Notes: a model not told the origin generated them from the letters alone. 64,000 nucleotides of DNA from Caecitellus pseudoparvulus (GCA_965644315.1 CBFFRQ010000008.1:1-64000); one strand, 5' to 3'. Shown: positions 1 to 48,678, counted from the first letter of the stretch. Made by a program: numbers and translations.

Positions 1-3000
1 TAACCCTAACCCTAACCCTAACCCTAACCCTAACCCTAACCCTAACCCTAACCCTAACCCTAACCCTAACCCTAACCCTAACCCTAACCCTAACCCTAAC
101 CCTAACCCTAACCCTAACCCTAACCCTAACCCTAACCCTAACCCTAACCCTAACCCTAACCCTAACCCTAACCCTAACCCTAACCCTAACCCTAACCCTA
201 ACCCTAACCCTAACCCTAACCCTAACCCTAACCCTAACCCTAACCCTAACCCTAACCCTAACCCTAACCCTAACCCTAACCCTAACCCTAACCCTAACCC
301 TAACCCTAACCCTAACCCTAACCCTAACCCTAACCCTAACCCTAACCCTAACCCTAACCCTAACCCTAACCCTAACCCTAACCCTAACCCTAACCCTAAC
401 CCTAACCCTAACCCTAACCCTAACCCTAACCCTAACCCTAACCCTAACCCTAACCCTAACCCTAACCCTAACCCTAACCCTAACCCTAACCCTAACCCTA
501 ACCCTAACCCTAACCCTAACCCTAACCCTAACCCTAACCCTAACCCTAACCCTAACCCTAACCCTAACCCTAACCCTAACCCTAACCCTAACCCTAACCC
601 TAACCCTAACCCTAACCCTAACCCTAACCCTAACCCTAACCCTAACCCTAACCCTAACCCTAACCCTAACCCTAACCCTAACCCTAACCCTAACCCTAAC
701 CCTAACCCTAACCCTAACCCTAACCCTAACCCTAACCCTAACCCTAACCCTAACCCTAACCCTAACCCTAACCCTAACCCTAACCCTAACCCTAACCCTA
801 ACCCTAACCCTAACCCTAACCCTAACCCTAACCCTAACCCTAACCCTAACCCTAACCCTAACCCTAACCCTAACCCTAACCCTAACCCTAACCCTAACCC
901 TAACCCTAACCCTAACCCTAACCCTAACCCTAACCCTAACCCTAACCCTAACCCTAACCCTAACCCTAACCCTAACCCTAACCCTAACCCTAACCCTAAC
1001 CCTAACCCTAACCCTAACCCTAACCCTAACCCTAACCCTAACCCTAACCCTAACCCTAACCCTAACCCTAACCCTAACCCTAACCCTAACCCTAACCCTA
1101 ACCCTAACCCTAACCCTAACCCTAACCCTAACCCTAACCCTAACCCTAACCCTAACCCTAACCCTAACCCTAACCCTAACCCTAACCCTAACCCTAACCC
1201 TAACCCTAACCCTAACCCTAACCCTAACCCTAACCCTAACCCTAACCCTAACCCTAACCCTAACCCTAACCCTAACCCTAACCCTAACCCTAACCCTAAC
1301 CCTAACCCTAACCCTAACCCTAACCCTAACCCTAACCCTAACCCTAACCCTAACCCTAACCCTAACCCTAACCCTAACCCTAACCCTAACCCTAACCCTA
1401 ACCCTAACCCTAACCCTAACCCTAACCCTAACCCTAACCCTAACCCTAACCCTAACCCTAACCCTAACCCTAACCCTAACCCTAACCCTAACCCTAACCC
1501 TAACCCTAACCCTAACCCTAACCCTAACCCTAACCCTAACCCTAACCCTAACCCTAACCCTAACCCTAACCCTAACCCTAACCCTAACCCTAACCCTAAC
1601 CCTAACCCTAACCCTAACCCTAACCCTAACCCTAACCCTAACCCTAACCCTAACCCTAACCCTAACCCTAACCCTAACCCTAACCCTAACCCTAACCCTA
1701 ACCCTAACCCTAACCCTAACCCTAACCCTAACCCTAACCCTAACCCTAACCCTAACCCTAACCCTAACCCTAACCCTAACCCTAACCCTAACCCTAACCC
1801 TAACCCTAACCCTAACCCTAACCCTAACCCTAACCCTAACCCTAACCCTAACCCTAACCCTAACCCTAACCCTAACCCTAACCCTAACCCTAACCCTAAC
1901 CCTAACCCTAACCCTAACCCTAACCCTAACCCTAACCCTAACCCTAACCCTAACCCTAACCCTAACCCTAACCCTAACCCTAACCCTAACCCTAACCCTA
2001 ACCCTAACCCTAACCCTAACCCTAACCCTAACCCTAACCCTAACCCTAACCCTAACCCTAACCCTAACCCTAACCCTAACCCTAACCCTAACCCTAACCC
2101 TAACCCTAACCCTAACCCTAACCCTAACCCTAACCCTAACCCTAACCCTAACCCTAACCCTAACCCTAACCCTAACCCTAACCCTAACCCTAACCCTAAC
2201 CCTAACCCTAACCCTAACCCTAACCCTAACCCTAACCCTAACCCTAACCCTAACCCTAACCCTAACCCTAACCCTAACCCTAACCCTAACCCTAACCCTA
2301 ACCCTAACCCTAACCCTAACCCTAACCCTAACCCTAACCCTAACCCTAACCCTAACCCTAACCCTAACCCTAACCCTAACCCTAACCCTAACCCTAACCC
2401 TAACCCTAACCCTAACCCTAACCCTAACCCTAACCCTAACCCTAACCCTAACCCTAACCCTAACCCTAACCCTAACCCTAACCCTAACCCTAACCCTAAC
2501 CCTAACCCTAACCCTAACCCTAACCCTAACCCTAACCCTAACCCTAACCCTAACCCTAACCCTAACCCTAACCCTAACCCTAACCCTAACCCTAACCCTA
2601 ACCCTAACCCTAACCCTAACCCTAACCCTAACCCTAACCCTAACCCTAACCCTAACCCTAACCCTAACCCTAACCCTAACCCTAACCCTAACCCTAACCC
2701 TAACCCTAACCCTAACCCTAACCCTAACCCTAACCCTAACCCTAACCCTAACCCTAACCCTAACCCTAACCCTAACCCTAACCCTAACCCTAACCCTAAC
2801 CCTAACCCTAACCCTAACCCTAACCCTAACCCTAACCCTAACCCTAACCCTAACCCTAACCCTAACCCTAACCCTAACCCTAACCCTAACCCTAACCCTA
2901 ACCCTAACCCTAACCCTAACCCTAACCCTAACCCTAACCCTAACCCTAACCCTAACCCTAACCCTAACCCTAACCCTAACCCTAACCCTAACCCTAACCC

Positions 3001-5218
3001 TAACCCTAACCCTAACCCTAACCCTAACCCTAACCCTAACCCTAACCCTAACCCTAACCCTAACCCTAACCCTAACCCTAACCCTAACCCTAACCCTAAC
3101 CCTAACCCTAACCCTAACCCTAACCCTAACCCTAACCCTAACCCTAACCCTAACCCTAACCCTAACCCTAACCCTAACCCTAACCCTAACCCTAACCCTA
3201 ACCCTAACCCTAACCCTAACCCTAACCCTAACCCTAACCCTAACCCTAACCCTAACCCTAACCCTAACCCTAACCCTAACCCTAACCCTAACCCTAACCC
3301 TAACCCTAACCCTAACCCTAACCCTAACCCTAACCCTAACCCTAACCCTAACCCTAACCCTAACCCTAACCCTAACCCTAACCCTAACCCTAACCCTAAC
3401 CCTAACCCTAACCCTAACCCTAACCCTAACCCTAACCCTAACCCTAACCCTAACCCTAACCCTAACCCTAACCCTAACCCTAACCCTAACCCTAACCCTA
3501 ACCCTAACCCTAACCCTAACCCTAACCCTAACCCTAACCCTAACCCTAACCCTAACCCTAACCCTAACCCTAACCCTAACCCTAACCCTAACCCTAACCC
3601 TAACCCTAACCCTAACCCTAACCCTAACCCTAACCCTAACCCTAACCCTAACCCTAACCCTAACCCTAACCCTAACCCTAACCCTAACCCTAACCCTAAC
3701 CCTAACCCTAACCCTAACCCTAACCCTAACCCTAACCCTAACCCTAACCCTAACCCTAACCCTAACCCTAACCCTAACCCTAACCCTAACCCTAACCCTA
3801 ACCCTAACCCTAACCCTAACCCTAACCCTAACCCTAACCCTAACCCTAACCCTAACCCTAACCCTAACCCTAACCCTAACCCTAACCCTAACCCTAACCC
3901 TAACCCTAACCCTAACCCTAACCCTAACCCTAACCCTAACCCTAACCCTAACCCTAACCCTAACCCTAACCCTAACCCTAACCCTAACCCTAACCCTAAC
4001 CCTAACCCTAACCCTAACCCTAACCCTAACCCTAACCCTAACCCTAACCCTAACCCTAACCCTAACCCTAACCCTAACCCTAACCCTAACCCTAACCCTA
4101 ACCCTAACCCTAACCCTAACCCTAACCCTAACCCTAACCCTAACCCTAACCCTAACCCTAACCCTAACCCTAACCCTAACCCTAACCCTAACCCTAACCC
4201 TAACCCTAACCCTAACCCTAACCCTAACCCTAACCCTAACCCTAACCCTAACCCTAACCCTAACCCTAACCCTAACCCTAACCCTAACCCTAACCCTAAC
4301 CCTAACCCTAACCCTAACCCTAACCCTAACCCTAACCCTAACCCTAACCCTAACCCTAACCCTAACCCTAACCCTAACCCTAACCCTAACCCTAACCCTA
4401 ACCCTAACCCTAACCCTAACCCTAACCCTAACCCTAACCCTAACCCTAACCCTAACCCTAACCCTAACCCTAACCCTAACCCTAACCCTAACCCTAACCC
4501 TAACCCTAACCCTAACCCTAACCCTAACCCTAACCCTAACCCTAACCCTAACCCTAACCCTAACCCTAACCCTAACCCTAACCCTAACCCTAACCCTAAC
4601 CCTAACCCTAACCCTAACCCTAACCCTAACCCTAACCCTAACCCTAACCCTAACCCTAACCCTAACCCTAACCCTAACCCTAACCCTAACCCTAACCCTA
4701 ACCCTAACCCTAACCCTAACCCTAACCCTAACCCTAACCCTAACCCTAACCCTAACCCTAACCCTAACCCTAACCCTAACCCTAACCCTAACCCTAACCC
4801 TAACCCTAACCCTAACCCTAACCCTAACCCTAACCCTAACCCTAACCCTAACCCTAACCCTAACCCTAACCCTAACCCTAACCCTAACCCTAACCCTAAC
4901 CCTAACCCTAACCCTAACCCTAACCCTAACCCTAACCCTAACCCTAACCCTAACCCTAACCCTAACCCTAACCCTAACCCTAACCCTAACCCTAACCCTA
5001 ACCCTAACCCTAACCCTAACCCTAACCCTAACCCTAACCCTAACCCTAACCCTAACCCTAACCCTAACCCTAACCCTAACCCTAACCCTAACCCTAACCC
5101 TAACCCTAACCCTAACCCTAACCCTAACCCTAACCCTAACCCTAACCCTAACCCTAACCCTAACCCTAACCCTAACCCTAACCCTAACCCTAACCCTAAC
5201 CCTAACCCTAACCCTAAC
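1..5218 (+). repeat. Telomeric repeat array (TAACCC)n = (TTAGGG)n, about 870 copies; chromosome end
   Basis: Hexamer tandem array from base 1 to 5218, with the C-rich strand at the 5' end as expected for a left telomere. Confidence 0.99.
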
Positions 5219-35713: not shown

Positions 35714-36601
35714 ATGGCACTGCTCGCTCGCACAGCCCGCAGGGCCTTGCCCGTGGTGGCAGCAGCTGCTCCCGCTGGATCAAGTGGTGCGCGCTCACTT
35801 GCGCGGCCTGGCGGTGCTCTGCTCGCCAGCGCATGTGCTGCAGCAGCAGTGGCTTGGCCTGTGCGTGCCATGGGCAGCGTGCCCTCTGGCGCGGACGAGA
35901 TGGACTTGCTGGACCCCGTGCAGTACGGCACGCCAGAGCGAGGCGATGGCACTGGAATGTGCGTCGAAGCAGTGCTGCTGCCGGCACGGAAGACTGCCCC
36001 TGTACAAGACGCTCTGCTCACGGCACAGGTGGAAGATCGTCACTGACGGGACACTGGATGACAATAGTCCCTACTGCTACATGATGATGGCGCACTACTT
36101 CAAGGACACGTGCATTGGTGCGTTCCGCGGTGCTGGCCACAACACGCCAAACGGGCGCTGCACGCTGCGCCCCTGCCCTGCACAGTGGCCAAGGACAAGG
36201 CGACAGGGAACATGCTGGGCTTCATCATTGGCTTCCGCCCCCCCAAGGACCAGGAATCGCTGTTCATTTGGCAGATGGGCACGGCAGAGGCTGCGCGCGG
36301 GAAGGGCGTGGCGAGCCGCCTGCTGCTGGAGCTGGCCGCCGCCAACTCCGACATCTCGTACATCAAGGCCACCGTGACGCCCACCAACGAGGCCAGCATG
36401 AACACATTCAAGAGCCTGGCCGCCAAGTTGAATTGCAACCTCAACGTCAACCGCAACTTGTTCCGGGTCACAGACTTCCCTGTCGACAGCGGGCACATGG
36501 CGGAGGACGAGGTGGTGGTGGGGCCCATCAAGCGCGCCCGTCTGCAGCACGCTGCCGCCCTGCTGCAGGAGAAGCAGGTGGCGGCGGCCAAGTCAGCCTG
36601 A
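35714..36601 (+). CDS. ectA: L-2,4-diaminobutyrate acetyltransferase with N-terminal presequence
   Basis: Introns 35959-36028 and 36118-36185 restore GDGTGMWKIV..LDDNSPYCY..FKDTCIVA..GF..P..LFIWQ..ARGKG..TVTPTNEAS..F. Confidence 0.9.
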
Positions 36602-36632
36602 GCTGCACCCTTCATGAATGCACACGCCCCCC

Positions 36633-39181
36633 TCACCAGTTCACTCGGGCAGTCCCCTCAGCGTCGGCACCGCCCAGGGGCATAGCGCTGGGAACGGACT
36701 GCAGCTCACTGGGCAGGGCCGACAGCGTGGAGCGATTGGCGTCCCCTGCCGGGCGTGCCCCCACTGGTGCAGAGTCCCCCGACGCCTGCCCAGCTGGAGC
36801 GGGCGCCGGCGTCACCTTGCCCTTCTGCCCCATCATGGCCGACAGCGAGTCACCCAGGGTGCTGCTAGGCTGGCCGTGCTTGCCGGCGTACTCGTCGCGC
36901 TCGGCGCATCCCGTCACGGACGCCGACACGTGCCGCATGATCTCCGCCTCGCCCCGCCCCACGCCGGGGTCCACTGGCCCGCCGAGACTGCGCTCCACTG
37001 GCTGCGGCGCCTGGTGGTCCACCCGCCGTGACGCCGCCACGAGAGAGGCAGCAGCCATGGCCTGTGTGTTCAGCGGCCGCTGCGCCGGCGTCGTGGCCGT
37101 GGACCAGCTGGGCAGGTGGCCAGCCGGCTGGGACAGGTGCCCCGCTGGCAGGGCTGGGGCAGCGGCGCCGGCGGGTTCAGTCTGGGCGGCGTAGTACCGC
37201 GCTGCACCCGCTGCAGCGGCCATGTCTGTCACAGGGCGCGCCACTTGGGCGGGGCCTGCCTGGTGCACGCCCCCCCCTCGCCCTGGCACGGCACTGGACG
37301 TGCGTGGGGCAGGCATGGACAGTGCGGCTGGGGCGGGGGCGGTGGAGGGCATGGTGGCGTGGGCGGCAGAGGTGCCGCCACGGTCGCCCGCTGCGACCAG
37401 CACCGAGGCAGAGTCCCCCACAGGTACGTGACCCACTGAGGAGGGGGGGTGCGCAGCCCCCCCTGCAGCCCCCCCCCTGCCGCCGTGCGCCGCCACCCCA
37501 GCACTGGGCGCATGGCCCATGATGTGCGAGCCAGTACCTGCCGAGGGCGCGCTGCCACTGCTGCCCCGTCGACTGCCCATCATGAGCCCTGCCACGCGCA
37601 TGGCCTGGTCCACGGCACTGGAGACGATGGAGGAGGAGGGGGGGATGTTGGCCGCCCGCGCCACCGCCTCCGCCGCCGTCGCGGCAGCTGCCCGCAACGC
37701 TGCATCCTCCATGGCACTGATGGAGCTCTCCCCGGCGCCAGTGGGGGGCGTGTCGTCCCCCACCGTAGACACGTGTGGCAGCGCACGGGGCGTGGGCACG
37801 GGCGTCGGCACGGCAGTAGTGGTGTTGCCAGCTGACGCGGCCAGCATCTCATGTGTCTGCGCCACGGCCGCCGTCAGCTGCTGCATCTGCCGCTGCAGGG
37901 CGTCAATGGAGGTGGACGGCGGCAGGCTGCTGGGCCCTGCGCTGCCACTGCCCGTCTGGCTCGCACGGCCGGGCGGCGGGGGCCCGTCACTGCCTGGTTG
38001 GCTGGCGGCGGACCGAGGCAGGGCGCCAGCGCCCCCCGGTGTGTGGGAGCCGATGCTGGCGAGGGTCTCGGCGATGGCGTGCTCTTCCTGGCGCGCAGAG
38101 GCGTCCTGGGGGGCGGGCCGTGTGGTCCGGCGAGTGCGTGTGAGGGGGATGCCAGCCGGGCCTACGTCTGGGCCGGAGGTGGTGTGGGTGTGACCCGAAG
38201 GCGTGCCGGAGACTTCGAAACGCCCCCCGCGCCCACCACGGTGGCCCTTGCCTAGCCCTGCCACCGGCACACCAGGTGCAGAGCCGACCAGGGAGTCATG
38301 CAGCATGAAGTCACCACCGACGCCGCCGCCGACGCCAGACACCTGGCTGACAGAGGCAGGGCCGGCTCCAGGCAAGCCAGTGGCAGCTTCAGGCACGGGC
38401 GGCATGGGGACGCCTGTTGTCGCGACAGGGCCTGGCGCTGGCAGTGCGGTGCCGGGTGCTGGGCGTTTGGTGGGGGGCGGCTCTGCAGGTTGTGCAGTTT
38501 GAGCTTCACGTTTCACACCTCCCACCTGGTGAGGGACGGGCGTCTCTGTCTCCTCCTGGGCACCCTCGGCGAGGGGCGTGGGCGGCCTGTCCCCTCCGAT
38601 TTCTGCGCAGGCAAGCGAGTGGTCGGCGTGTGCGCTGGGGCTTCAACAGGAACGCTCCGCGCCAGTGCTGAGAAAACGCACTTTCGGCGATGGCGTTGGC
38701 TGTCTTGTTGGTTTTTCGCACGACCAGGCTGAGCGTGTCCCGGCGCCCCCGCACGAAGAAGCGGTGCGTGTAGCACGCTGTGCGTCGAGACCTGTTCAGG
38801 ACGCCAGCGGCCTCGCTGTCCGCAGCCGAGAGCTTGGAGAAGGCTGTGAGAAGGGCGTGCAGGGGTTGCGGAATTTGCCGAGCCAAACCTTGGCACCAGT
38901 GCTCACCGTAGAAGGACAGCTGCCGTGCAAAGCTGGCAAAGTTGTTGTGCGCGAAGTATGTAGGCAGGACCTTGTCGGCCAGGGCCTTGGTGTCCTGCGG
39001 GGCGGAGCAAGCGCCAGCTGCGCCAGTGCCGAGGCACGCCGCTGCACCAACACCGAGCACGCACACGAATGGCGAAGCTGCGGCCATCCTGCGTCCACGA
39101 GATGAGGCCCAAGGGTTCACTGGACACCATGTCGTACAGGCTCTGCACGAAGGCAGCCACCGTCAGCTGCGCGGCACTCAT
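36633..39181 (-). CDS. HSF-type DNA-binding-domain transcription factor (spliced; low-complexity C-terminus)
   Basis: FVQSLYDMV..ISWTQDGRSFAI / VLPTYFAHNNFASFARQLSFY / YTHRFFVRGRRDTLSLVVRK, spread over exons. Confidence 0.87.
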
Positions 39182-39462
39182 GGCAGGCGGCACGGCAGCA
39201 GTTTGCACAGCGCGAGGTGCAGCCCGCTGACAGGCGAGCGCTGCAGCGGCAAGCCACGCAGGCAGCGGGGCAGGCGGCTGGTGAATGGGGTGCAGGTGCG
39301 GGTGGTACACCACGCTGCATCTGCAGAGTGCGCCTGGATTGTGAGGTGATGTCTGCGCTGCGCGGCAGGTCAGCGCCGGGACGCAGGCCACGTCAGGAGA
39401 AGGCGCGGCCGTGCAAGGTGCCTGTGTCTGACACCACGCCGCCCCCACGCGCCGAGCGGGCC

Positions 39463-42198
39463 TCAACGCAGCACCACTGCATCCCCTATACCTGCAGCAA
39501 AGCGAAGAGTGCGTGCGTTTGCCTCGGCGTGCGCAGCGGCCTGCGCAACAGTGGCCAACATGACCACCCGAGTGCCAGGCATGCCCAGCACCGGCCGCAA
39601 GCAGCGTGTCAGAGCGCTATCACGGAACGGCAGCACGCGGCGGCCTCCGCTGCGCAGCGCAGAGCTGGCACTGGCCATGCCATGCAACACCTTGCCCAGC
39701 GCAGTCAATCCCTTGCTCACGGCGCCTGCTTCGGCCAGGCGTTTGGAGTCCCGCGCCGTTCCTGCTTGCAAAGCCCGCTCAGCGCCCGCCAAGTCACAGA
39801 ACAGCACCAAACCGTCATGCACGGGCGGCGTGGTGCCGTCTGCTCCTGGGAGGGAGACGCCTTGCAGCACCAAGGCTATGCACAGGTGAGAGCGGGAGGA
39901 GGTGGTGTTACATCGCGTGGCCGCCGTGTGGCGCCGGGCCACGCCAGCGCTCAACACCTGCAGCGCCTCCGCCACACTGCCCACAGCGGTGCACTGCACA
40001 CACGGAGGAACAGCAGTGTTTTGGGCAGCTGCGCCTGCTTTTTCCTTCCTCGGCGCTGCCTGTGTGCCGCTCAAGTCCACCACGCGCTCGTGGGCCACCT
40101 CCCACACCGCAACCTTGCACCGTACGCCTGACAAGTACGTGTTGTTCACCCACGCAGGAGAGAAGGGGGCCCCCGCGTCGGCGTCGTAGGATGTGTCAGG
40201 GGAAGCATCGGCGTCTCCCCCCCGCAGCACCCGGCCACACCGCCTCCACAGCATTTCGAACACTTGGTACAGGGCCCGAGGCACAATGCCCGCATCGGCA
40301 CCTGCGCCCCCCCACAACGTGTGGCTCTTACCGCTGCCTGTTGCCCCCCACGCAAAGACGGCCAGGCGCTTGGGTGCGAGGGATGGCACGTCCAGTCCTG
40401 CAGCTCCCGCTGAGGTGAAGGCAGCAGGGGGGGCGGGCACCGCCGCTTGCACTGCGCCTCGCAGCTCGTCGAACACTTCCTCCTGCCGGGAGCCTTCGTC
40501 AAAGACCCGGTCAAAGGCAAGTTGCCGGGTCCCAGAGGTGCCTTTCTGGGCACCCTTGTACAGCCCCTTGCGCCCCAGCACCTCCTCGTACGACGGCCTA
40601 GGCGCTGCCAAACTCACGACGGTTCGCGAGCCGTCGGGTGTAACGTCTCCCACCCGCACCGCGCTGCCCGCTGTCGCCCCAGCCTCGTCTTCCAGGGCAG
40701 GCCGAATGCGGCACAGGACGCGAATGGTGCCCCGCACATCACACAGCCAGTCCCGCATGCGGCGGGCGGCTTCCTGCTGTGCCGAAGCAGCGCCTTCCGC
40801 AGCTCGCAGGCGGCGAGCGGCTTCGGCTGACACGGCCTTCGCGCTGGCTGCCGCGCCGGCCGATGACGACGCAGCAGCTCGCAGGGAAGTCACTTCACTC
40901 TGCAGCGCGGCCACTTCCTGGCTGCGCTGCTTGGCGACGTGGGCGAGGGATGCAACGCTGGGGTTGATTGCGCCGGCCACACGGGACAGCATGCCGGCGA
41001 GAACGCCCATTGTGTGCCGCGCATCGCGCTGCAGCTGAGTGTGCTGGCGGCGCACACGTTGCACGTGCCGTGCCACGCCTCGGGCAGCTGGTGCCAGGTC
41101 TATGCGGCGCTCAGCAACGGGCGATGTGCCGGCGACGGGGGCAGCCCCCGCGCTGACGTACGGGGCAGCGGCGCTGGGCACACCCGCCCCTTCCTGTGCC
41201 TGAGCAGGGTGTGTAGTTGTGAAGGGGGCGTCAAGCTGGCAAGCCGGTTTATCGAGAACAGTTGTTCCTTGGTGCTGCGGGAGGGGGTTGGCGGGGACAG
41301 CCCTGCCCCGCGGCCCCCGAGGCGGTGATGCCGGCACGGGCACGCTCTCTCGCACGGCAGGCGACAGGGCACGGCCACTGGGCGTCTTGCTTGCGTGCGT
41401 CCCCCGCCGCACGTCCTTGGCCAGCCCCTGCCGCAGTGCAGCTTGAAGCCGCTTCTGCGGGCTGCTGCGTTTGGGCCGTGGCGCGGAGCTCCCAGCTCCA
41501 GCTTTCCTCTGACGCTGTGCAGCGGGCTGGGCTGCCGGGGGGGCTTTGCGCACGAGGAACGAGACATCGGGGCGACGAGGCAGAGAGTGTGCTTTGGTGC
41601 CGGTGCCGCCGGTGATGAACGGCCGCTTCGGCCGGGGTTCAGCCAGGCGGCGAGGCAGCTTGGACGCCCTCGCTGCCGGCGGTGAGTCGCGTGGGGCAGG
41701 CTCCACCCCCCTGGAATCGGCCGTAGCTGAGCCCCCTGACGCACGCACGGGGTCGGTAAAACTGGAGGGTGTGTGGGGTTGTGACGACTCGCCTGCAGCT
41801 TCGCTGCTCCGCTCCAACTGGGCCAGGGGCTCGTGGGCGTTACCCTGACGTTTCGGCTGCATAGGAAGCCCCTCGGCCTCGCCCAATTGCAAGCCCTGCA
41901 CAGCTGGCTGGTCGTGTCCCGGCACGACAAAGCGCTCATCCAGCTCTTTCAATACTTGCTCGGCATACTCAAACGTGCTCTGCCGGTGAGAGGCAGCGAG
42001 GAGGCCCTCGGAGGGGGATGCACTGGCTGCTGCCGTTGTGGGTGGAATGTCCAGCGGGCTTGCCGAATCCTCGCGCTCCAGCTCGGGAAGACCAGGGGAA
42101 GCAAATGCAGACAGCAGTCGTGCAGTAGAAGGTGCCATGGAGGTGCCCTCCGGCGGCCCTGCGCGCTCTGCAGTTGGAAAGAGGTCGAACTCGTCCAT
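39463..42198 (-). CDS. Kinesin-14-type protein (C-terminal motor)
   Basis: RGTIRVLCRIRP, FDRVF, GATGSGKS, NTTSSRSH, DLAGAER and PFRDSALT motifs. Confidence 0.92.
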   Translation of the reverse strand: MDEFDLFPTAERAGPPEGTSMAPSTARLLSAFASPGLPELEREDSASPLDIPPTTAAASASPSEGLLAASHRQSTFEYAEQVLKELDERFVVPGHDQPAVQGLQLGEAEGLPMQPKRQGNAHEPLAQLERSSEAAGESSQPHTPSSFTDPVRASGGSATADSRGVEPAPRDSPPAARASKLPRRLAEPRPKRPFITGGTGTKAHSLPRRPDVSFLVRKAPPAAQPAAQRQRKAGAGSSAPRPKRSSPQKRLQAALRQGLAKDVRRGTHASKTPSGRALSPAVRESVPVPASPPRGPRGRAVPANPLPQHQGTTVLDKPACQLDAPFTTTHPAQAQEGAGVPSAAAPYVSAGAAPVAGTSPVAERRIDLAPAARGVARHVQRVRRQHTQLQRDARHTMGVLAGMLSRVAGAINPSVASLAHVAKQRSQEVAALQSEVTSLRAAASSSAGAAASAKAVSAEAARRLRAAEGAASAQQEAARRMRDWLCDVRGTIRVLCRIRPALEDEAGATAGSAVRVGDVTPDGSRTVVSLAAPRPSYEEVLGRKGLYKGAQKGTSGTRQLAFDRVFDEGSRQEEVFDELRGAVQAAVPAPPAAFTSAGAAGLDVPSLAPKRLAVFAWGATGSGKSHTLWGGAGADAGIVPRALYQVFEMLWRRCGRVLRGGDADASPDTSYDADAGAPFSPAWVNNTYLSGVRCKVAVWEVAHERVVDLSGTQAAPRKEKAGAAAQNTAVPPCVQCTAVGSVAEALQVLSAGVARRHTAATRCNTTSSRSHLCIALVLQGVSLPGADGTTPPVHDGLVLFCDLAGAERALQAGTARDSKRLAEAGAVSKGLTALGKVLHGMASASSALRSGGRRVLPFRDSALTRCLRPVLGMPGTRVVMLATVAQAAAHAEANARTLRFAAGIGDAVVLR

Positions 42199-42466
42199 GC
42201 TGCCCAACTTCACTGGCTCTGCCCGGGCCTGCGCAACAACACAAGCGATACAGGCAGCAACTGGCTGTTTGGAGAGTCCCCTGAGCAACCGTCGTGCAAA
42301 CTTTGACACCCCGGCACATCCTTATTTTGGTCAAACTCGCGCAGCTTGGCAGGTGCCAGCCACGCGGGCACAGCCCCAAACCCACAACCCCCCACAGCGT
42401 GCGACACGGCCTTGGCAAGTACCAGTGCATCCCTAACCTACCGCTCTGCATTTCACCAACCTGCGC

Positions 42467-43170
42467 TCACCTGATGAGCAGCTCTGCGATCTGGACGGCA
42501 TTGGTAGCGGCACCCTTCAGCAGCTGGTCCCCTGCCAGGAACAGGTTCAGCCCCTTGCCTTCTGGCTGGGACAAGTCCTCGCGGAGACGCCCCACCAATA
42601 CGTCATCCTGGTCGGCGGCGTGGATGGGCTCGGGGAAGGAGCCGCCCTCCCTGTCGTCCACAATCTTGACACCAGGCGCAGAGGCCAGAATCTCCCGGGC
42701 AGCGTCTGCAGTCATGGACTTGTTCAGGGTCAGGTTGATGTCCTCACAGTGAGCCCTCAAGATGGGCACGCGAATGCACGTGGCTGTGACCTGTGGGAGA
42801 GCGGGCGGAAGGCGGTGCGCAGTTCAAAGCACGGCGGCTGCAAACGGCCAGCACAGCCACACACCTTGATGGAGTCGTCGTGGAAGATCTTGCCTGTCTC
42901 CTGCACCATCTTCATCTCCTCCTCGTTGTACCCGTTGGGCGTGATGGGGGAGTCGTGCGAGAACAGGTTGAAGGCGTACTGGCGCCCCCACATGTCCATG
43001 GGCCAGGAATCCACGGCATCACCCCGTGCCCAGGCCTTGGTCTGCTCCTCCAACTCGGCCATGGCTGCCGCGCCGGCGCCAGAAGAGGCCTGGTACGTGG
43101 ACACGACGGCGCGCTGAATGCCAGCCTCCTTGTGCAAGGGCCACAGCGGCACGGCCATGATGATGGTGGA

Positions 43171-43201
<31 letters not shown>

Positions 43202-43727
43202 TGCAGGGCGTCGTCGGGGTTCACCTCCGGCACGACAAGGGGCACGTCCGGGTGCAGGCGGAAGGCAGAGGAGTTGTCAATGACCACTGCGCCGGCGTCC
43301 ACTGCGGCTGGGGCGAACTCCTTGGAACGCGCACCGCCCGCGCTGAACAGCGCAATGTCCACATCCTTGAAGCTGTCCGCGCCCAGCTCCTCCACAGTGT
43401 AGTCTGTGCCCTCGTGGGTGATGGTGCTGCCTGCTGAGCGAGCTGATGCCAGCAGCTTCAGCTGTGCGGCGGCAGGCGTGGTGAAGTGCGGAGGTTCAGG
43501 CAGCGAAGGCCGACCAGTTGGGCAGGCGCAGAGGACTGCGGCGCAGGACGCACGTTGCTGAAGGGCACGCCTCGCTGGGACAGCACACGGAGCAGATCCT
43601 GCCCCACTGCGCCTGTTGCGCCGGCGATGGCGATGGAGGGCGCTGCGGCTCCGCCTTTCCAGGCCTTGCCAGACGCAGCAGCTGTGCTGAGGGCACGTCG
43701 TGCGCTGGTGGCTGCCGCAGACATCAT
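42467..43727 (-). CDS. asd: Aspartate-semialdehyde dehydrogenase with presequence
   Basis: IAGATGAVG, DIALFSAG, IDNSSAFR, IIANPNCST, STYQASSGAG, RVPILRAH and DQLLKGAATNAVQIAE. Introns 43553-43462 and 42864-42791. Confidence 0.95.
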
Positions 43728-43860
43728 TTTGAAGGCGTGTAGCTTGAAGGGGGAGACGAGGGAGGCGGGGGGCGCTGGCTGCAAAGGTTTAGTTGGTTGA
43801 AGGTTGATTGGTATGTGCGGTGGTCAGTGCTCTGCGCGCTGTGTTCTGCCCTGGCATCAG

Positions 43861-43878
43861 AGGAAGTGTGCACTCCCT
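43861..43878. promoter_or_regulatory. Palindromic motif variant AGGAAGTGTGCACTCCCT in the asd/ectB divergent intergenic region
   Basis: Matches the motifs upstream of ectC and ask. Confidence 0.55.
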
Positions 43879-44111
43879 GTGAGCTGGAGGCCCCCCTCGA
43901 CCACGCCGGAGGCCTGCGCCAAAGCCCGACCAACTCGCCCACAAACGCCGTCCTGCGTCACTTTCAAACACCCACACGAATCTCCACACCACCCACATTG
44001 CTAACCCGAAGTTGCTGCACGCCAGCAACCCGTACAATCAAAGCATCAGCCCTCTCCCATCACGCTGCCGGCGGGGTGGAACAGTTGAGCAAACTCCGCA
44101 GCCACCACACA

Positions 44112-45751
44112 ATGTTGACTTCCGCTGTCGCCACAGCCGCGCGAAGCGTGCGCCTTTCCACAGCAGCTGCAGCTACCTCTCGAGGTGCTGCAGGCTTGGT
44201 GGCGTCCATGAGCACTAACGCCGCAAACCTCAAGGTGTGTGCGCCGTCGCCCGGCCGGGCGCCCTCCAGCCAAATTTTGCGCTGCAGGCCACCTGCACCT
44301 CGCTCACACCGCCCGCTGGATGCAGATGCCTGAGGAGCACGAATCCAACGCACGAGGCTACGTGCGCAAGTTCCCCATGTCCATCGCCAAGGCTTCAGGG
44401 GTCACCATCACAGGTGAGGCGGCCGGCTGCCCAGCACGCGCACGCACTCGCCCCGCCTCACTTCCCCTGCGCCACCCCCACAGATGTCGAGGGCAACGAG
44501 TACTTCGACTGCCTGCAGTGCGCTGGCACTCTGGCCCTGGGGCACAACCACCCCGTGGCAGTGGAGGCCGCCAAGTCCTTCCTGGACAGCGGCTCCCCCA
44601 TGCAGGTGCTGGACCTGAACTCGCCCTACAAGAACGCCTTCATGAAGGAGCTGCTGGGGCTGCTGCCTGACAACCTGACCCGCCTGCACTTCGCCTCCCC
44701 TGCCGGCACGGACTGCTTGGATGCCGCCGTGAAGCTGTGCAAGGTGGCCACTGGCCGCCGCGCCGTCGTCTCCTTCCACGGCGGCTACCACGGCATGGGG
44801 CAGAGCACCATGGCCATGATGGGCAACCTGAACACCAAGTCCAACGTGCCGGGGCTGATGGGGGACACCTACTTCCTGCCCTTCCCCTACCAGTACCGCC
44901 AGCCCTTCGGCATCAAGGACCCCGAGGAGGCTGACGCGGCTGTCATGGCGTACATCGAGACCGCCCTGCGCGATGACGAGTCGGGCATTCCCAAGCCCGC
45001 CTGCGTGGTGGTGGAGGCCATCCAGGGCGAGGGCGGCGTGCAGCCCATGTCCCCGTGGGCTATGCGCGAGCTGCGCCGCATCACCAAGGAGCAAGACATC
45101 CCCCTCGTCATCGATGAGGTGCAGGCGGGCTTCTGCCGCTCCGGCCGTGTCTTCGCCTTCCAGCACTCCGACGAGGGCCCAGAGGTGTCCGCGCCCATCG
45201 CCTCTGATGCCAAGTACGGCGGCATCAAGCCCGACGTCGTGTGCATGAGCAAGGCTGTGGGCGGCGGCATGCCCCAGGCAGTGGTGGCGTTCTCCGAGGA
45301 GCTGAACAAGTGGGCGCCCGCTGCCCACACCGGCACTTTCCGCGGGAACCAGATCTCCTTCGCCACCGGCACAGCCACCCTGCAGTACATGCAGGAGCAC
45401 AAGCTGTGGGAGAAGGCGGAGCGCCAGGGCGAGTGGCTGCAGAAGCGCTTGAACGAGCTGGCAGAGGAGACCGGCATCATCGGCGACGTGCGTGGGCGTG
45501 GGCTCATGGTGGGCGCAGAGTTGGTGCGCAAGGATGCGACGGACCACAACGGCGTGCCCATGCCAGACGGCGAGGCGGCCGCGGCGGTGCAGGCACACGC
45601 CTTCAAGGAGAAGAAGCTGATCATCGAGAAGGGCGGCCGCCACGGCGGCGTGCTGCGTTTCCTGCCCCCCCTCACCGTCACTGACGAGGAGTTGGAGCGC
45701 TGCGTGGACATGTTCAGCGACAGCGTCCGAGCAGTGGCTGCCTCTAGGTAA
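44112..45751 (+). CDS. ectB: Diaminobutyrate--2-oxoglutarate aminotransferase (class III PLP; EctB function inferred) with presequence
   Basis: Introns 44235-44325 and 44414-44483. ESNARGYVRKFP, AGTLALGHNHP, EAIQGEGG, IDEVQAG, SKAVGGG (PLP Lys) and HTGTFRGNQ motifs. Confidence 0.9.
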
Positions 45752-45800
45752 ATGCATGTTCAACAGGGAGGCAAGCAGACTAGCGCATGCATTGGGGGGC

Positions 45801-46495
45801 CTACTTGCCCTCGAAGCCGACTGGCACGCTGCGGGTGCCGTTCACCAGGCTAGCCGGCGGCTTGATGAGCTTCTCAGACACCGTCGCGCCGTCCATGGTG
45901 AAGTGCGCCGCGCCCTCGTCGTCCACGGCAGGGTACACGCCGTCGGCGTTGTGGTCCTCAGTCCCCGCCACAGGCGGGTTGAAGGCGCACACAACGACGA
46001 TGTCCCCCTTCGTGGCGCGCAGGTAGTGCCGCTCCTGGCCGTCCAGCCCGTACATGGTGCCGGGAGCCAGCTTGTGCACGATGCCCTCGCCTTCCTTTTG
46101 GTCGGGGCCCACCAGCTCGATTTCGCCTTCACCGTGCGTGATGAACACGGCCTCTACGTGGTTCTGGTACCAGATGAGGGTGCTGGTGCCTTCCTTCACA
46201 ATGGTCCTGCACAGCGGGGTGCAAGGCGTCGGCACAAGGTGACACTACTTGCTCCGACTTTCCTGCCCGAATTCCGCACTCACCTGTGCATGCTGAACCC
46301 CATGCCGTCCTTGCGGGTCAAGTACCGCTGGGACTGCCATGTGCCCGTTGCTGCGTCCTTCACTCCGCCAGCTGCCTGCACGTCCTCAAAGGTGCGGATG
46401 ATGAAGGTGCGGCTGGCCGCCGGCGTGGCGGCGCGCACGGCAGCCCTGGCTGCTCCCGCGACTCGGCTGCGCACGGCAGTGGCTGCAGACAACAT
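45801..46495 (-). CDS. ectC: Ectoine synthase with presequence
   Basis: Intron 46283-46207. WQSQRYL..DGMGFS, WYQNHVEAV..GEGE, PGTMYGLD..HYLRA and FNPPVAGTEDH..GVYP motifs. Confidence 0.96.
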
Positions 46496-46630
46496 GATGG
46501 GCAGAGGGGTGTGTGTATAAAGTCAGTGGAGAAGGGAGGGTGTGAAAGGTGGGCGGTGGTTTTGCGGTGAAAGTGATGTGGCCGGGGAACACCGACTTGC
46601 GACACGCAGAAGCTGTAGACTCCGTCGGCG

Positions 46631-46652
46631 TGGTGAAGTGCACACTTCACCA
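46631..46652. promoter_or_regulatory. Palindrome TGGTGAAGTG-CA-CACTTCACCA upstream of ectC
   Basis: Perfect 10-bp arms, centred ~146 nt upstream of the ectC ATG. Confidence 0.6.
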
Positions 46653-46741
46653 GCGACAGCTGAGCACGCACAGCCGCGGCGACACAATGATTGCATTATC
46701 AGGCAGCAGCCGCAATTACACTAGCAGTCGGAAATGGGGTT

Positions 46742-48516
46742 TCAAGCCACCATCTCATCGTGCAGTGCAGAGAGAGCTGCCTTTGTGTCAGGCGTCGGCA
46801 CAACGACGCAAAGGTTGTGCTTGGAGTTGGACACGACGGGGGGCACGTACGCCTTGATGCCCTGGTCGGAGAGGCGAGACAGCACTGCCTCGCGAGTGGT
46901 GGCCTCGTCCACCTCGTCGCCCACCAGCACCAGCATAGCGGCGTCCTCCACTGCGCGCACGCCCGTCTGGCTTGCCAGCTCCGCCTCGTCCAGTCGCATG
47001 GAGGACGAGCGCTGCAGCACCGTGGGCAGGGCGGCCTTGGTGATGCTGGTGACGGGGCCAGAGGTGGTGCCGGCATCCGTGATCAGTGTGCCGGGCAGCT
47101 CGGGGCGCAGGGTGTTCTTGACGACAACGGGGATGCCGCGCTGCTGCGCGGGCAGCATGGTGGCGGGGTGCAGCACCTTCTTGCCGAACTGCACCAACTC
47201 ATGGGCTTCGTTGTAAGAGAGGCGGGGAATGGTGGTGTCCACATCTGCATCGTGCACGACGCCTGTGAACCCGTCCTCCCAGTCCGCCATCATGCCGTCT
47301 TCGCCCTTGACGCACTCCACCTTCCACACGACAACTGCTGCGTTGCCCTCCGTGCGTGCCAGGAGAGAAGCCAGGGTGCTGGCGGTCAGGTCGCTGCCGC
47401 CACGGCCAAAGGTGCACACGCTGCCATCTGTGGCCTCAGGGTGGCCCCCGAAGAAGCCAGTGACGCAAGGCACGCCGCGGCCGTCCAGGATGGGGTGCAG
47501 CACGTTCTGGGCCATGTCGCGGGACGCGGCCAGATCGGGCTTGGCATCTGTGTGCACGCCGTCCGTCACGATGACGCGGTCGGCAGGGACGTACTCAGAG
47601 GGCACTCCCAGCATGCGCAGCGTGCCACTCATCACCTGGTTGCTCATGCGCTCGCCAGCTGTGACGATGCCGTCTGAAACACGCCCCTCCAGCTTGCCGG
47701 CTTCGGCGGCTTCCAGGTACAGCCGCCACGTCGCGCCCATGGTGTCGTGCAAGTGGGTCATGCTGGTCTGCAGCTCAGTGGCAGAGCCAGCCATGAGCTC
47801 GCCTGTGGAGGGGGAGGGACAGCGTGCCGTGCCGCGTGCAAGTGGTACGTGTTTACATGCCGGCGGAAAGGGCGGGTATTGAGGAGCGCGCAGGAAAAAG
47901 TTCCGCTCCGCTCAAAGCCCGGCGGGGGGCAGGGTAGAGCACGCACCGATGACGCCCTCGTGCCAGTGCAGGAGGCGGTCATGAGTCTCTTTCAGCTTCT
48001 TCATGTCCCCTGCTTCTGCAGCTTGGCTGCACTGGATGAGGCGGTCTGTGCAGAGGCAGGCGGAACGAGGCGTGTTGGCAAAGTCGGATCAAGCGTTCGG
48101 AACGCTGCCAACCACACACCAGTCACACCGTAGAACGCGGAGAGCACGCCGACAGTCCTGAGAAAACGGATAGGGACAAGCTATGAATAGTTGAGCTTGG
48201 TTTGGGCGGATTTGTTTCACAGATCAGCGCCGCGAAGGCGCCAGCCTGCACGTTCGACTCTGCACACGCACCTTGAGCCGGCATCCCGGTATGCCTTGAG
48301 AAGCCGCCCAACGTTGCGCACAGCAGGCGCGTTGCCCACAGACGAGCCGCCGAACTTCATGACAACTGCGTCCAGCTTGCCCTCTGTTGCAGGCACGGCC
48401 GCCTGCTCAGGCGTTGGGGCGGTCCATGCTGTTGCAAGGGGTCGTCCGCTGGACACGGCTCGGGAGCCAAATTGGTGTGCCACACGGGCAGCGGTGCGAG
48501 ATGCGGAGGTCAACAT
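46742..48516 (-). CDS. ask: Aspartokinase with presequence
   Basis: VMKFGGSSVG, VLSAFYGVTD, GERMS, VTGF, TFGRGGSD, KVLHP and VKNT..PGT motifs. Frame-consistent introns 48271-48158, 48119-48046 and 47946-47803. Confidence 0.93.
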
Positions 48517-48660: not shown

Positions 48661-48678
48661 GTGAAGTCCACACTTCAC
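48661..48678. promoter_or_regulatory. Palindrome GTGAAGT-CCAC-ACTTCAC upstream of ask
   Basis: 17/18 identical to the ectC motif core; ~153 nt upstream of the ask ATG. Confidence 0.6.

Follow-up and report, generated by a model that had tools for sequence, protein, structure and literature searches.

The first 64,000 nucleotides (nt) of a contig of Caecitellus pseudoparvulus (GCA_965644315.1 CBFFRQ010000008.1:1-64000; called the window here, with positions counted from its first letter) contain, at positions 35714-48516, a complete set of five pathway genes: ectA, asd, the gene of a diaminobutyrate (DABA) transaminase (ectB), ectC and ask. This locus most probably represents a functional nuclear gene cluster for the complete route from aspartate to ectoine, in a heterotrophic stramenopile whose relatives include the bicosoecids Cafeteria and Halocafeteria. 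The initial annotation of this DNA had placed all five steps of that route within 12.8 kilobases (kb), and each of the genes was confirmed there. The coding features, all with exons in the order of transcription, are the following.

35714-36601, plus strand: ectA, diaminobutyrate acetyltransferase (TIGR02406), 249 amino acids; exons 35714-35958, 36029-36117 and 36186-36601; introns of 70 and 68 nt
42467-43727, minus strand: asd, bacterial-type aspartate-semialdehyde dehydrogenase (PRK14874/TIGR01296), 364 amino acids; exons 43727-43554, 43461-42865 and 42790-42467; introns of 92 and 74 nt
44112-45751, plus strand: diaminobutyrate--2-oxoglutarate transaminase (very likely functional EctB, Dat-type; TIGR00709), 492 amino acids; exons 44112-44234, 44326-44413 and 44484-45751; introns of 91 and 70 nt
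45801-46495, minus strand: ectC, ectoine synthase (PF06339), 205 amino acids; exons 46495-46284 and 46206-45801; intron of 77 nt
46742-48516, minus strand: ask, aspartokinase (PF00696), 480 amino acids; exons 48516-48272, 48157-48120, 48045-47947 and 47802-46742; introns of 114, 74 and 144 nt

In the proposed route, Ask would phosphorylate aspartate and Asd would reduce the phosphorylated product to aspartate semialdehyde, which the Dat-type transaminase would convert, with glutamate, to L-2,4-diaminobutyrate. EctA would acetylate this intermediate with acetyl-CoA, and the iron-dependent cupin EctC would then close the ring to yield ectoine. The predicted role of the product is that of an osmoprotectant. 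It would not be hydroxylated, since no ectD was found in the window or in the 30.6-Mb assembly using TIGR02408 and Paenibacillus EctD queries, neither of which was accompanied by a positive control. The absence of ectD from the window had also been recorded initially, and no match was found there.

Gene models and nuclear origin

The gene models were built from GT..AG intervals that restore both the reading frame and homology. Profile and database searches were run exon by exon, and the joined proteins were used only in local alignments, trees and codon comparisons. Ten introns of 68-144 nt were predicted, two each in ectA, asd and the transaminase gene, one in ectC and three in ask, the small exons of the latter being placed with the help of homologues. 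All ten are of the type GTG..CAG; five begin with GTGCGT, three with GTGTGT, and seven end in CACAG. Their removal leaves uninterrupted open reading frames (ORFs) of the lengths given above, and the splice junctions are free of gaps in comparisons with homologous proteins, some of which, from Cafeteria and Halocafeteria, derive from transcripts. What looked like a frameshift in ectA, near position 36020, was considered and rejected: no indel is present at this site in an independent assembly, and the EctA motif is free of gaps once a 70-nt intron running from GTGCGT to CACAG is assumed.

Over up to 16 kb, the window is matched collinearly by four metagenome scaffolds that originate from other samples (98.3-99.1 % identity). 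One of these alignments, with scaffold L021, was checked position by position; it has five gap positions, none of them in exons, and the indel in the ectA region falls within intron 2. The codon differences from this metagenome strain comprise 41 synonymous and 4 non-synonymous changes, while about 25 % synonymous changes would be expected at random (binomial p = 8e-21, using the frames of the gene models), which indicates purifying selection on the genes of the cluster. The independent collinear assemblies and the substitution pattern together show that the genes are linked, correctly framed and under purifying selection. The spliceosomal introns that had been proposed for each gene are thus upheld by homology and by the pattern of synonymous change, and the five genes are, as judged from the sequence, intact and spliced.

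The families to which ectA, ectC and the transaminase gene belong are mainly bacterial, and the locus could for that reason be suspected to be bacterial contamination or a chimeric assembly. The probability of this is close to nil and it can be dismissed. Ten introns of the spliceosomal type interrupt the genes, the contig carries a telomere, and genes for a kinesin, an HSF-type protein, IFT57 and Integrator-3 flank the cluster or are interleaved with it. At third codon positions, the five genes have a GC content of 0.79-0.87, similar to the 0.70-0.80 in the neighbouring genes for kinesin, IFT57 and Integrator-3, and the identical arrangement is present in the four independent metagenome assemblies.

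Enzymes of the pathway

EctC is the sole ectoine synthase in the 30.6-Mb assembly. Its two exons score 100.3 and 28 bits with PF06339 (cut-off 27), and the protein aligns with the structure of EctC of P. lautus (5ONM) with E = 2e-26. Taking the roles of the iron ligands and of the residues that bind substrate or product as defined in PMC6344544, the equivalents of the ligands Glu-57, Tyr-84 as well as His-92 are identical, as are those of Trp-21, Ser-23, Arg-25, Thr-40, Tyr-52 and Phe-106. In a tree, for which as for the other trees a quick search was used with SH-aLRT as the only support value, EctC falls in a clade with the Cafeteria and Halocafeteria proteins, on a eukaryote-like side that is separated from 48 prokaryotic sequences with 98 % support. 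No bacterial donor stands out among these 48 sequences, which come from many phyla and all lie across one branch. The eukaryote-like EctC proteins have in common an insertion of 7-8 residues in a loop (around PDQKEGE) and a C-terminal extension of about 40 residues, both of which are absent from prokaryotic EctC.

The only family matched by the ectA exons is TIGR02406, and the gene encodes the sole EctA-like acetyltransferase in the 30.6-Mb assembly. The nearest solved structure is that of EctA from P. lautus (6SJY).

All five proteins start with 30-60 residues that are rich in Arg, Ala, Ser and Thr. These N-termini contain 3-5 Arg or Lys residues and no Asp or Glu in the first 36-60 positions, the first acidic residue being found at position 37-61. 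Because each extension has this composition and is free of acidic residues, the five enzymes are predicted to be imported into mitochondria.

Several observations weigh against the preferred reading of the locus as a functional ectoine cluster. The ectA gene is 6.1 kb away from the other four genes, with the HSF-like and kinesin genes in between, and in an uncultured relative (locus L108) no ectA was found within 10 kb of the four-gene core. The two scoring exons of ectA reach 80.6 and 27.0 bits, a sum of about 108 that is below the TIGR02406 cut-off of 120.6 bits when scored exon by exon. EctC has a His at the position of Asn-38 of the P. lautus enzyme; the same residue is present in two prokaryote-type EctC sequences of the alignment, one of them from Microbacterium suaedae. 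Mitochondrial import is a prediction from the composition of the N-termini. Finally, the transaminase scores 286.3 bits with TIGR02407, the model of canonical EctB, and fails its cut-off of 552.2.

This last point has consequences for the name ectB under which the gene was first annotated: the transaminase step is present, while the identity with canonical operon EctB had to be given up on the basis of model scores and a tree. With TIGR00709, the Dat-type model, the protein scores 434.3 bits and passes the cut-off of 401.6. It gives 415-430 bits against Dat-type enzymes from outside operons and 135-245 bits against 73 EctB proteins from bacterial ectABC operons, and is 47-50 % identical to the named bacterial Dat-type proteins returned (Bacillus, Paenibacillus, Hahella and Avibacterium). 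In the tree, operon EctB forms one clade (100 % support) that is separate from the window transaminase. The latter belongs to a 16-member clade (99 %) with Cafeteria and other transcriptome-derived proteins, which adjoins the bacterial Dat-type enzymes; no Halocafeteria protein was among the transaminase matches listed. The best solved structure is that of C. salexigens EctB (6RL5; E = 5e-59), and in the alignment with it the Ser-Lys motif, the expected site of the lysine that binds pyridoxal phosphate, is kept. The same clade includes proteins with an N-terminal domain above the EctA cut-off (128.5 and 121.1 bits). In two metagenome contigs (L109:1670-3915 and L110:43-1965) an EctA domain is joined to a Dat-type transaminase, in one as a single ORF and in the other as two ORFs with a CA-rich, intron-like spacer of 190 nt; these have the appearance of an EctA-EctB gene fusion in a different lineage, probably a eukaryotic one. 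Although it resembles Dat-type transaminases in exceeding the cut-off of their model, the window enzyme differs from them in its eukaryote-like clade, its linkage or fusion to EctA and its position beside EctC. It very likely does the job of EctB, and would catalyze the same reaction, as an enzyme with the same EC class, with an ancestry different from that of the operon gene.

The type of the transaminase also bears on the product of the cluster, which might be something other than ectoine, such as free or acetylated diaminobutyrate or a diaminobutyrate-derived precursor of a polyamine or siderophore. Bacteria use Dat-type enzymes outside ect operons, and the window enzyme has its best scores with Dat-type models and is grouped with bacterial enzymes from outside operons. 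Such a product is nonetheless very improbable, as EctC has retained all of its metal ligands and almost all residues that bind the substrate and is under purifying selection, and as the same transaminase clade is found fused to EctA elsewhere and its gene is close to ectC in every lineage seen. The assignment of ectoine as the product is therefore preferred.

The asd exons score 261, 131.6 and 23.4 bits with PRK14874/TIGR01296, and Asd aligns with the solved Asd 8JUO (E = 1e-48) and keeps the active-site motif NPNCS. Ask has the KFGGSS motif, a kinase domain and a weak ACT match; like the other four enzymes, it is matched by both a family model and a solved structure. It falls in a 22-member clade (96 %) that consists of one amoebozoan and probably protist sequences, apart from plant-type Ask, from Vibrio-type operon Ask and from the organism's own bifunctional enzyme. 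That enzyme, an Ask/diaminopimelate decarboxylase, is encoded on contig 67 (NF006515, 590.6 bits, with a lysA match at the C-terminus in the same frame), and contig 64 carries a second asd, of the archaeal/eukaryote type. The ask and asd genes of the cluster are thus extra copies, which means that the genome has two parallel entries into the aspartate pathway. The remaining amino-acid-kinase matches in the genome are glutamate 5-kinase and isopentenyl phosphate kinase, and the remaining class-III aminotransferases are ornithine aminotransferase and one unrelated enzyme.

Ask and Asd also serve the synthesis of lysine, threonine and methionine, and Ask does not group with the operon-linked Ask of bacteria. 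One or both genes could therefore be ordinary amino-acid genes that happen to lie next to a true ectA, ectB and ectC set, to which the dedicated cluster would then be confined. This is unlikely in view of the second copies of both genes elsewhere in the genome, the Ect-type N-terminal extension that Ask and Asd share, and the linkage to ect genes, which holds for asd in all four lineages examined and for ask in three of them. A dedicated five-gene cluster remains the better description. In Ask, only some 110 residues follow the kinase domain (46742-47100, at the C-terminus), and its closest relatives are without recorded ACT matches. Feedback regulation of this Ask may differ from that of ordinary aspartokinases.

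Related loci in protists and bacteria

In the window the order of the genes is ectA, HSF, kinesin, asd, ectB, ectC and ask. The last four of these genes adjoin one another, separated by 384, 49 and 246 nt, and are oriented as initially described: asd leftward, ectB rightward, ectC and ask leftward. By sequence comparison, the nearest named relatives for the genes of the cluster are the bicosoecids Cafeteria and Halocafeteria. The synteny in relatives that had been suggested as a check was examined in the following loci.

The uncultured relative, with 53-68 % protein identity, has ask, ectC, ectB and asd in the same order and orientation as the window. It also shares the Integrator-3 and RMD1 flanks with the window, and has P450 and RCC1-like genes inserted. 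A fragmentary assembly (L027) carries Integrator-3, P450, ask and ectC. In Cafeteria (C. roenbergensis/burkhardae, GCA_008330625.1 and GCA_008330635.1) the order is ectB, ectA, ectC, an amino-acid transporter gene and asd. The four pathway genes, which are orthologous to those of the window (55-69 % protein identity), also lie within 10 kb in this locus, but their order is changed, the transporter gene is inserted, and no ask was found in the 20 kb fetched; the C. burkhardae genome differs in having a guanine-plus-cytosine (GC) content of about 70 %. No paper on the genomic ect cluster of Cafeteria was found, and PMC4987115 mentions Cafeteria transcripts only. The inserted Aa_trans gene (L018:11539-13452), between ectC and asd, is a candidate solute carrier. 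No Aa_trans gene is part of the cluster in the window; in other parts of the genome there are at least ten such loci.

Harding et al. described a cluster of the same kind in Halocafeteria seosinensis, with the order ectB-ask-ectA-ectC and asd three genes downstream (Harding et al. 2016, PMC4987115), in line with the earlier remark that ectoine genes are known in such protists. The authors reported introns in the ect genes, mitochondrial signals for every enzyme, Ask and aspartate-semialdehyde dehydrogenase among them, and a second, bifunctional Ask, and argued that the cluster copies are extra; they also noted ect transcripts in Cafeteria (PMC4987115). This picture has been repeated in reviews. 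In both organisms the nuclear cluster comprises ectA, ectB, ectC and ask and has asd in its vicinity; introns are found throughout, the proteins have N-terminal extensions, which in the window are putative mitochondrial signals, a separate bifunctional Ask/diaminopimelate decarboxylase is encoded elsewhere, and the EctC proteins fall in one clade. They differ in that the EctC proteins are about 61-66 % identical and that Halocafeteria has an ectoine/hydroxyectoine cluster with ectD at another locus, which was not found here. Moreover, the Halocafeteria genome is 38.9 Mb in size, has 46.8 % GC and a telomere unit of 7 nt, as compared to 30.6 Mb, about 64 % GC (from the window profile) and a 6-nt unit. 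The cluster in the window is homologous to the published one, and its genes are orthologues of those clustered in related protists, the gene order having been reshuffled between lineages. That linkage is conserved while the order changes fits a cluster that is held by selection and was rearranged after its acquisition. The view that it is a eukaryote-style cluster, assembled or rearranged after transfer, is in agreement with its introns and with the order that differs between lineages.

The bacterial ectABC(-ectD)(-ask) operon encodes the same three committed activities, EctA and EctC of the same families and, in some cases, a dedicated aspartokinase. In contrast to the genes described here, those of the operon are co-directional and intron-free and specify cytoplasmic enzymes. 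Operon EctB forms a clade apart from the window transaminase, and the operon Ask proteins of Vibrio and Grimontia are very distant from the window Ask. An asd gene beside ectC was not found in the 80 bacterial loci examined.

Neighbouring features and origin of the cluster

The remaining features of the window are listed below. Those without a direction carry no strand assignment.

1-5217: telomere repeat (CCCTAA units) at the end of the contig
36633-39181, minus strand: gene with an HSF-type DNA-binding domain (PF00447), not a pathway enzyme
39463-42309, minus strand: kinesin gene (PF00225, E = 2e-48) between ectA and the core
43863-43876: GAAGT-N4-ACTTC palindrome with one mismatch, in the divergent asd/ectB promoter, 136 nt upstream of the asd ATG
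46635-46648: exact GAAGT-N4-ACTTC palindrome, 140 nt upstream of the ectC ATG
48663-48676: exact GAAGT-N4-ACTTC palindrome, 147 nt upstream of the ask ATG

The window starts with a perfect CCCTAA array of 5,217 bp to which unique sequence is directly joined, as expected from the description of the contig as telomere-bearing. The ect cluster, about 30 kb from this array, is subtelomeric, and past the telomere the base composition of the window is about 60-70 % GC. The HSF-like gene has a weak PF00447 match in the piece from the window (17.2 bits), and the same ORF is recorded with PF00447 in scaffold L021, which is 98 % identical. The fetched ect loci of the distant relative (L108 and L027) yielded no homologue of the HSF-like gene, and none of the genes on record in the fetched Cafeteria ect locus has an HSF domain. 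The palindrome occurs five times in the whole window, where 0.88 matches are expected. There is none upstream of ectA. The 98 %-identical strain has retained the palindrome, which is absent, at up to one mismatch, from the related loci L025 and L027 and from that of Cafeteria. Nothing was built on it, because among relatives only the near-identical strain has it.

The eukaryotic cluster may not be a stolen bacterial operon, having instead been assembled and kept together inside eukaryotes from separately derived genes. This is put forward tentatively, as an origin to which we give rather less than even odds. Such a cluster would combine EctA and EctC from the operon families with a transaminase of the Dat lineage, an aspartokinase of a protist-specific family and a bacterial-type asd. 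Despite repeated rearrangements, linkage would have been kept in four or more stramenopile lineages, non-halophiles possibly among them, and the cluster of this species could have its own regulation through the embedded HSF-type factor and the shared promoter palindrome.

Ectoine has long been considered a prokaryotic solute. To our knowledge, the only well-described eukaryotic cluster for its synthesis is that of an extreme halophile, which was interpreted as consisting of genes acquired from prey. The basic picture published in 2016 is unchanged: the same kind of cluster, with introns, mitochondrial signals, a nearby asd and a second bifunctional Ask, was already known (PMC4987115). Modest additions to it are the Dat-type origin of the transaminase, the extra bacterial-type asd, the four-gene core that a distant relative has conserved, and the failure to detect ectD. 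Taken together with the loci of Cafeteria and of an uncultured relative, the cluster shows the pathway to be a trait that is conserved and under selection in a broader group of bacterivorous stramenopiles. Linkage, including that of dedicated ask and asd copies, has outlasted several rearrangements, and the transaminase differs from the operon enzyme. The compact eukaryotic pathway of five genes would be usable for expression studies, and the idea of a stolen operon can now be tested against that of stepwise assembly.

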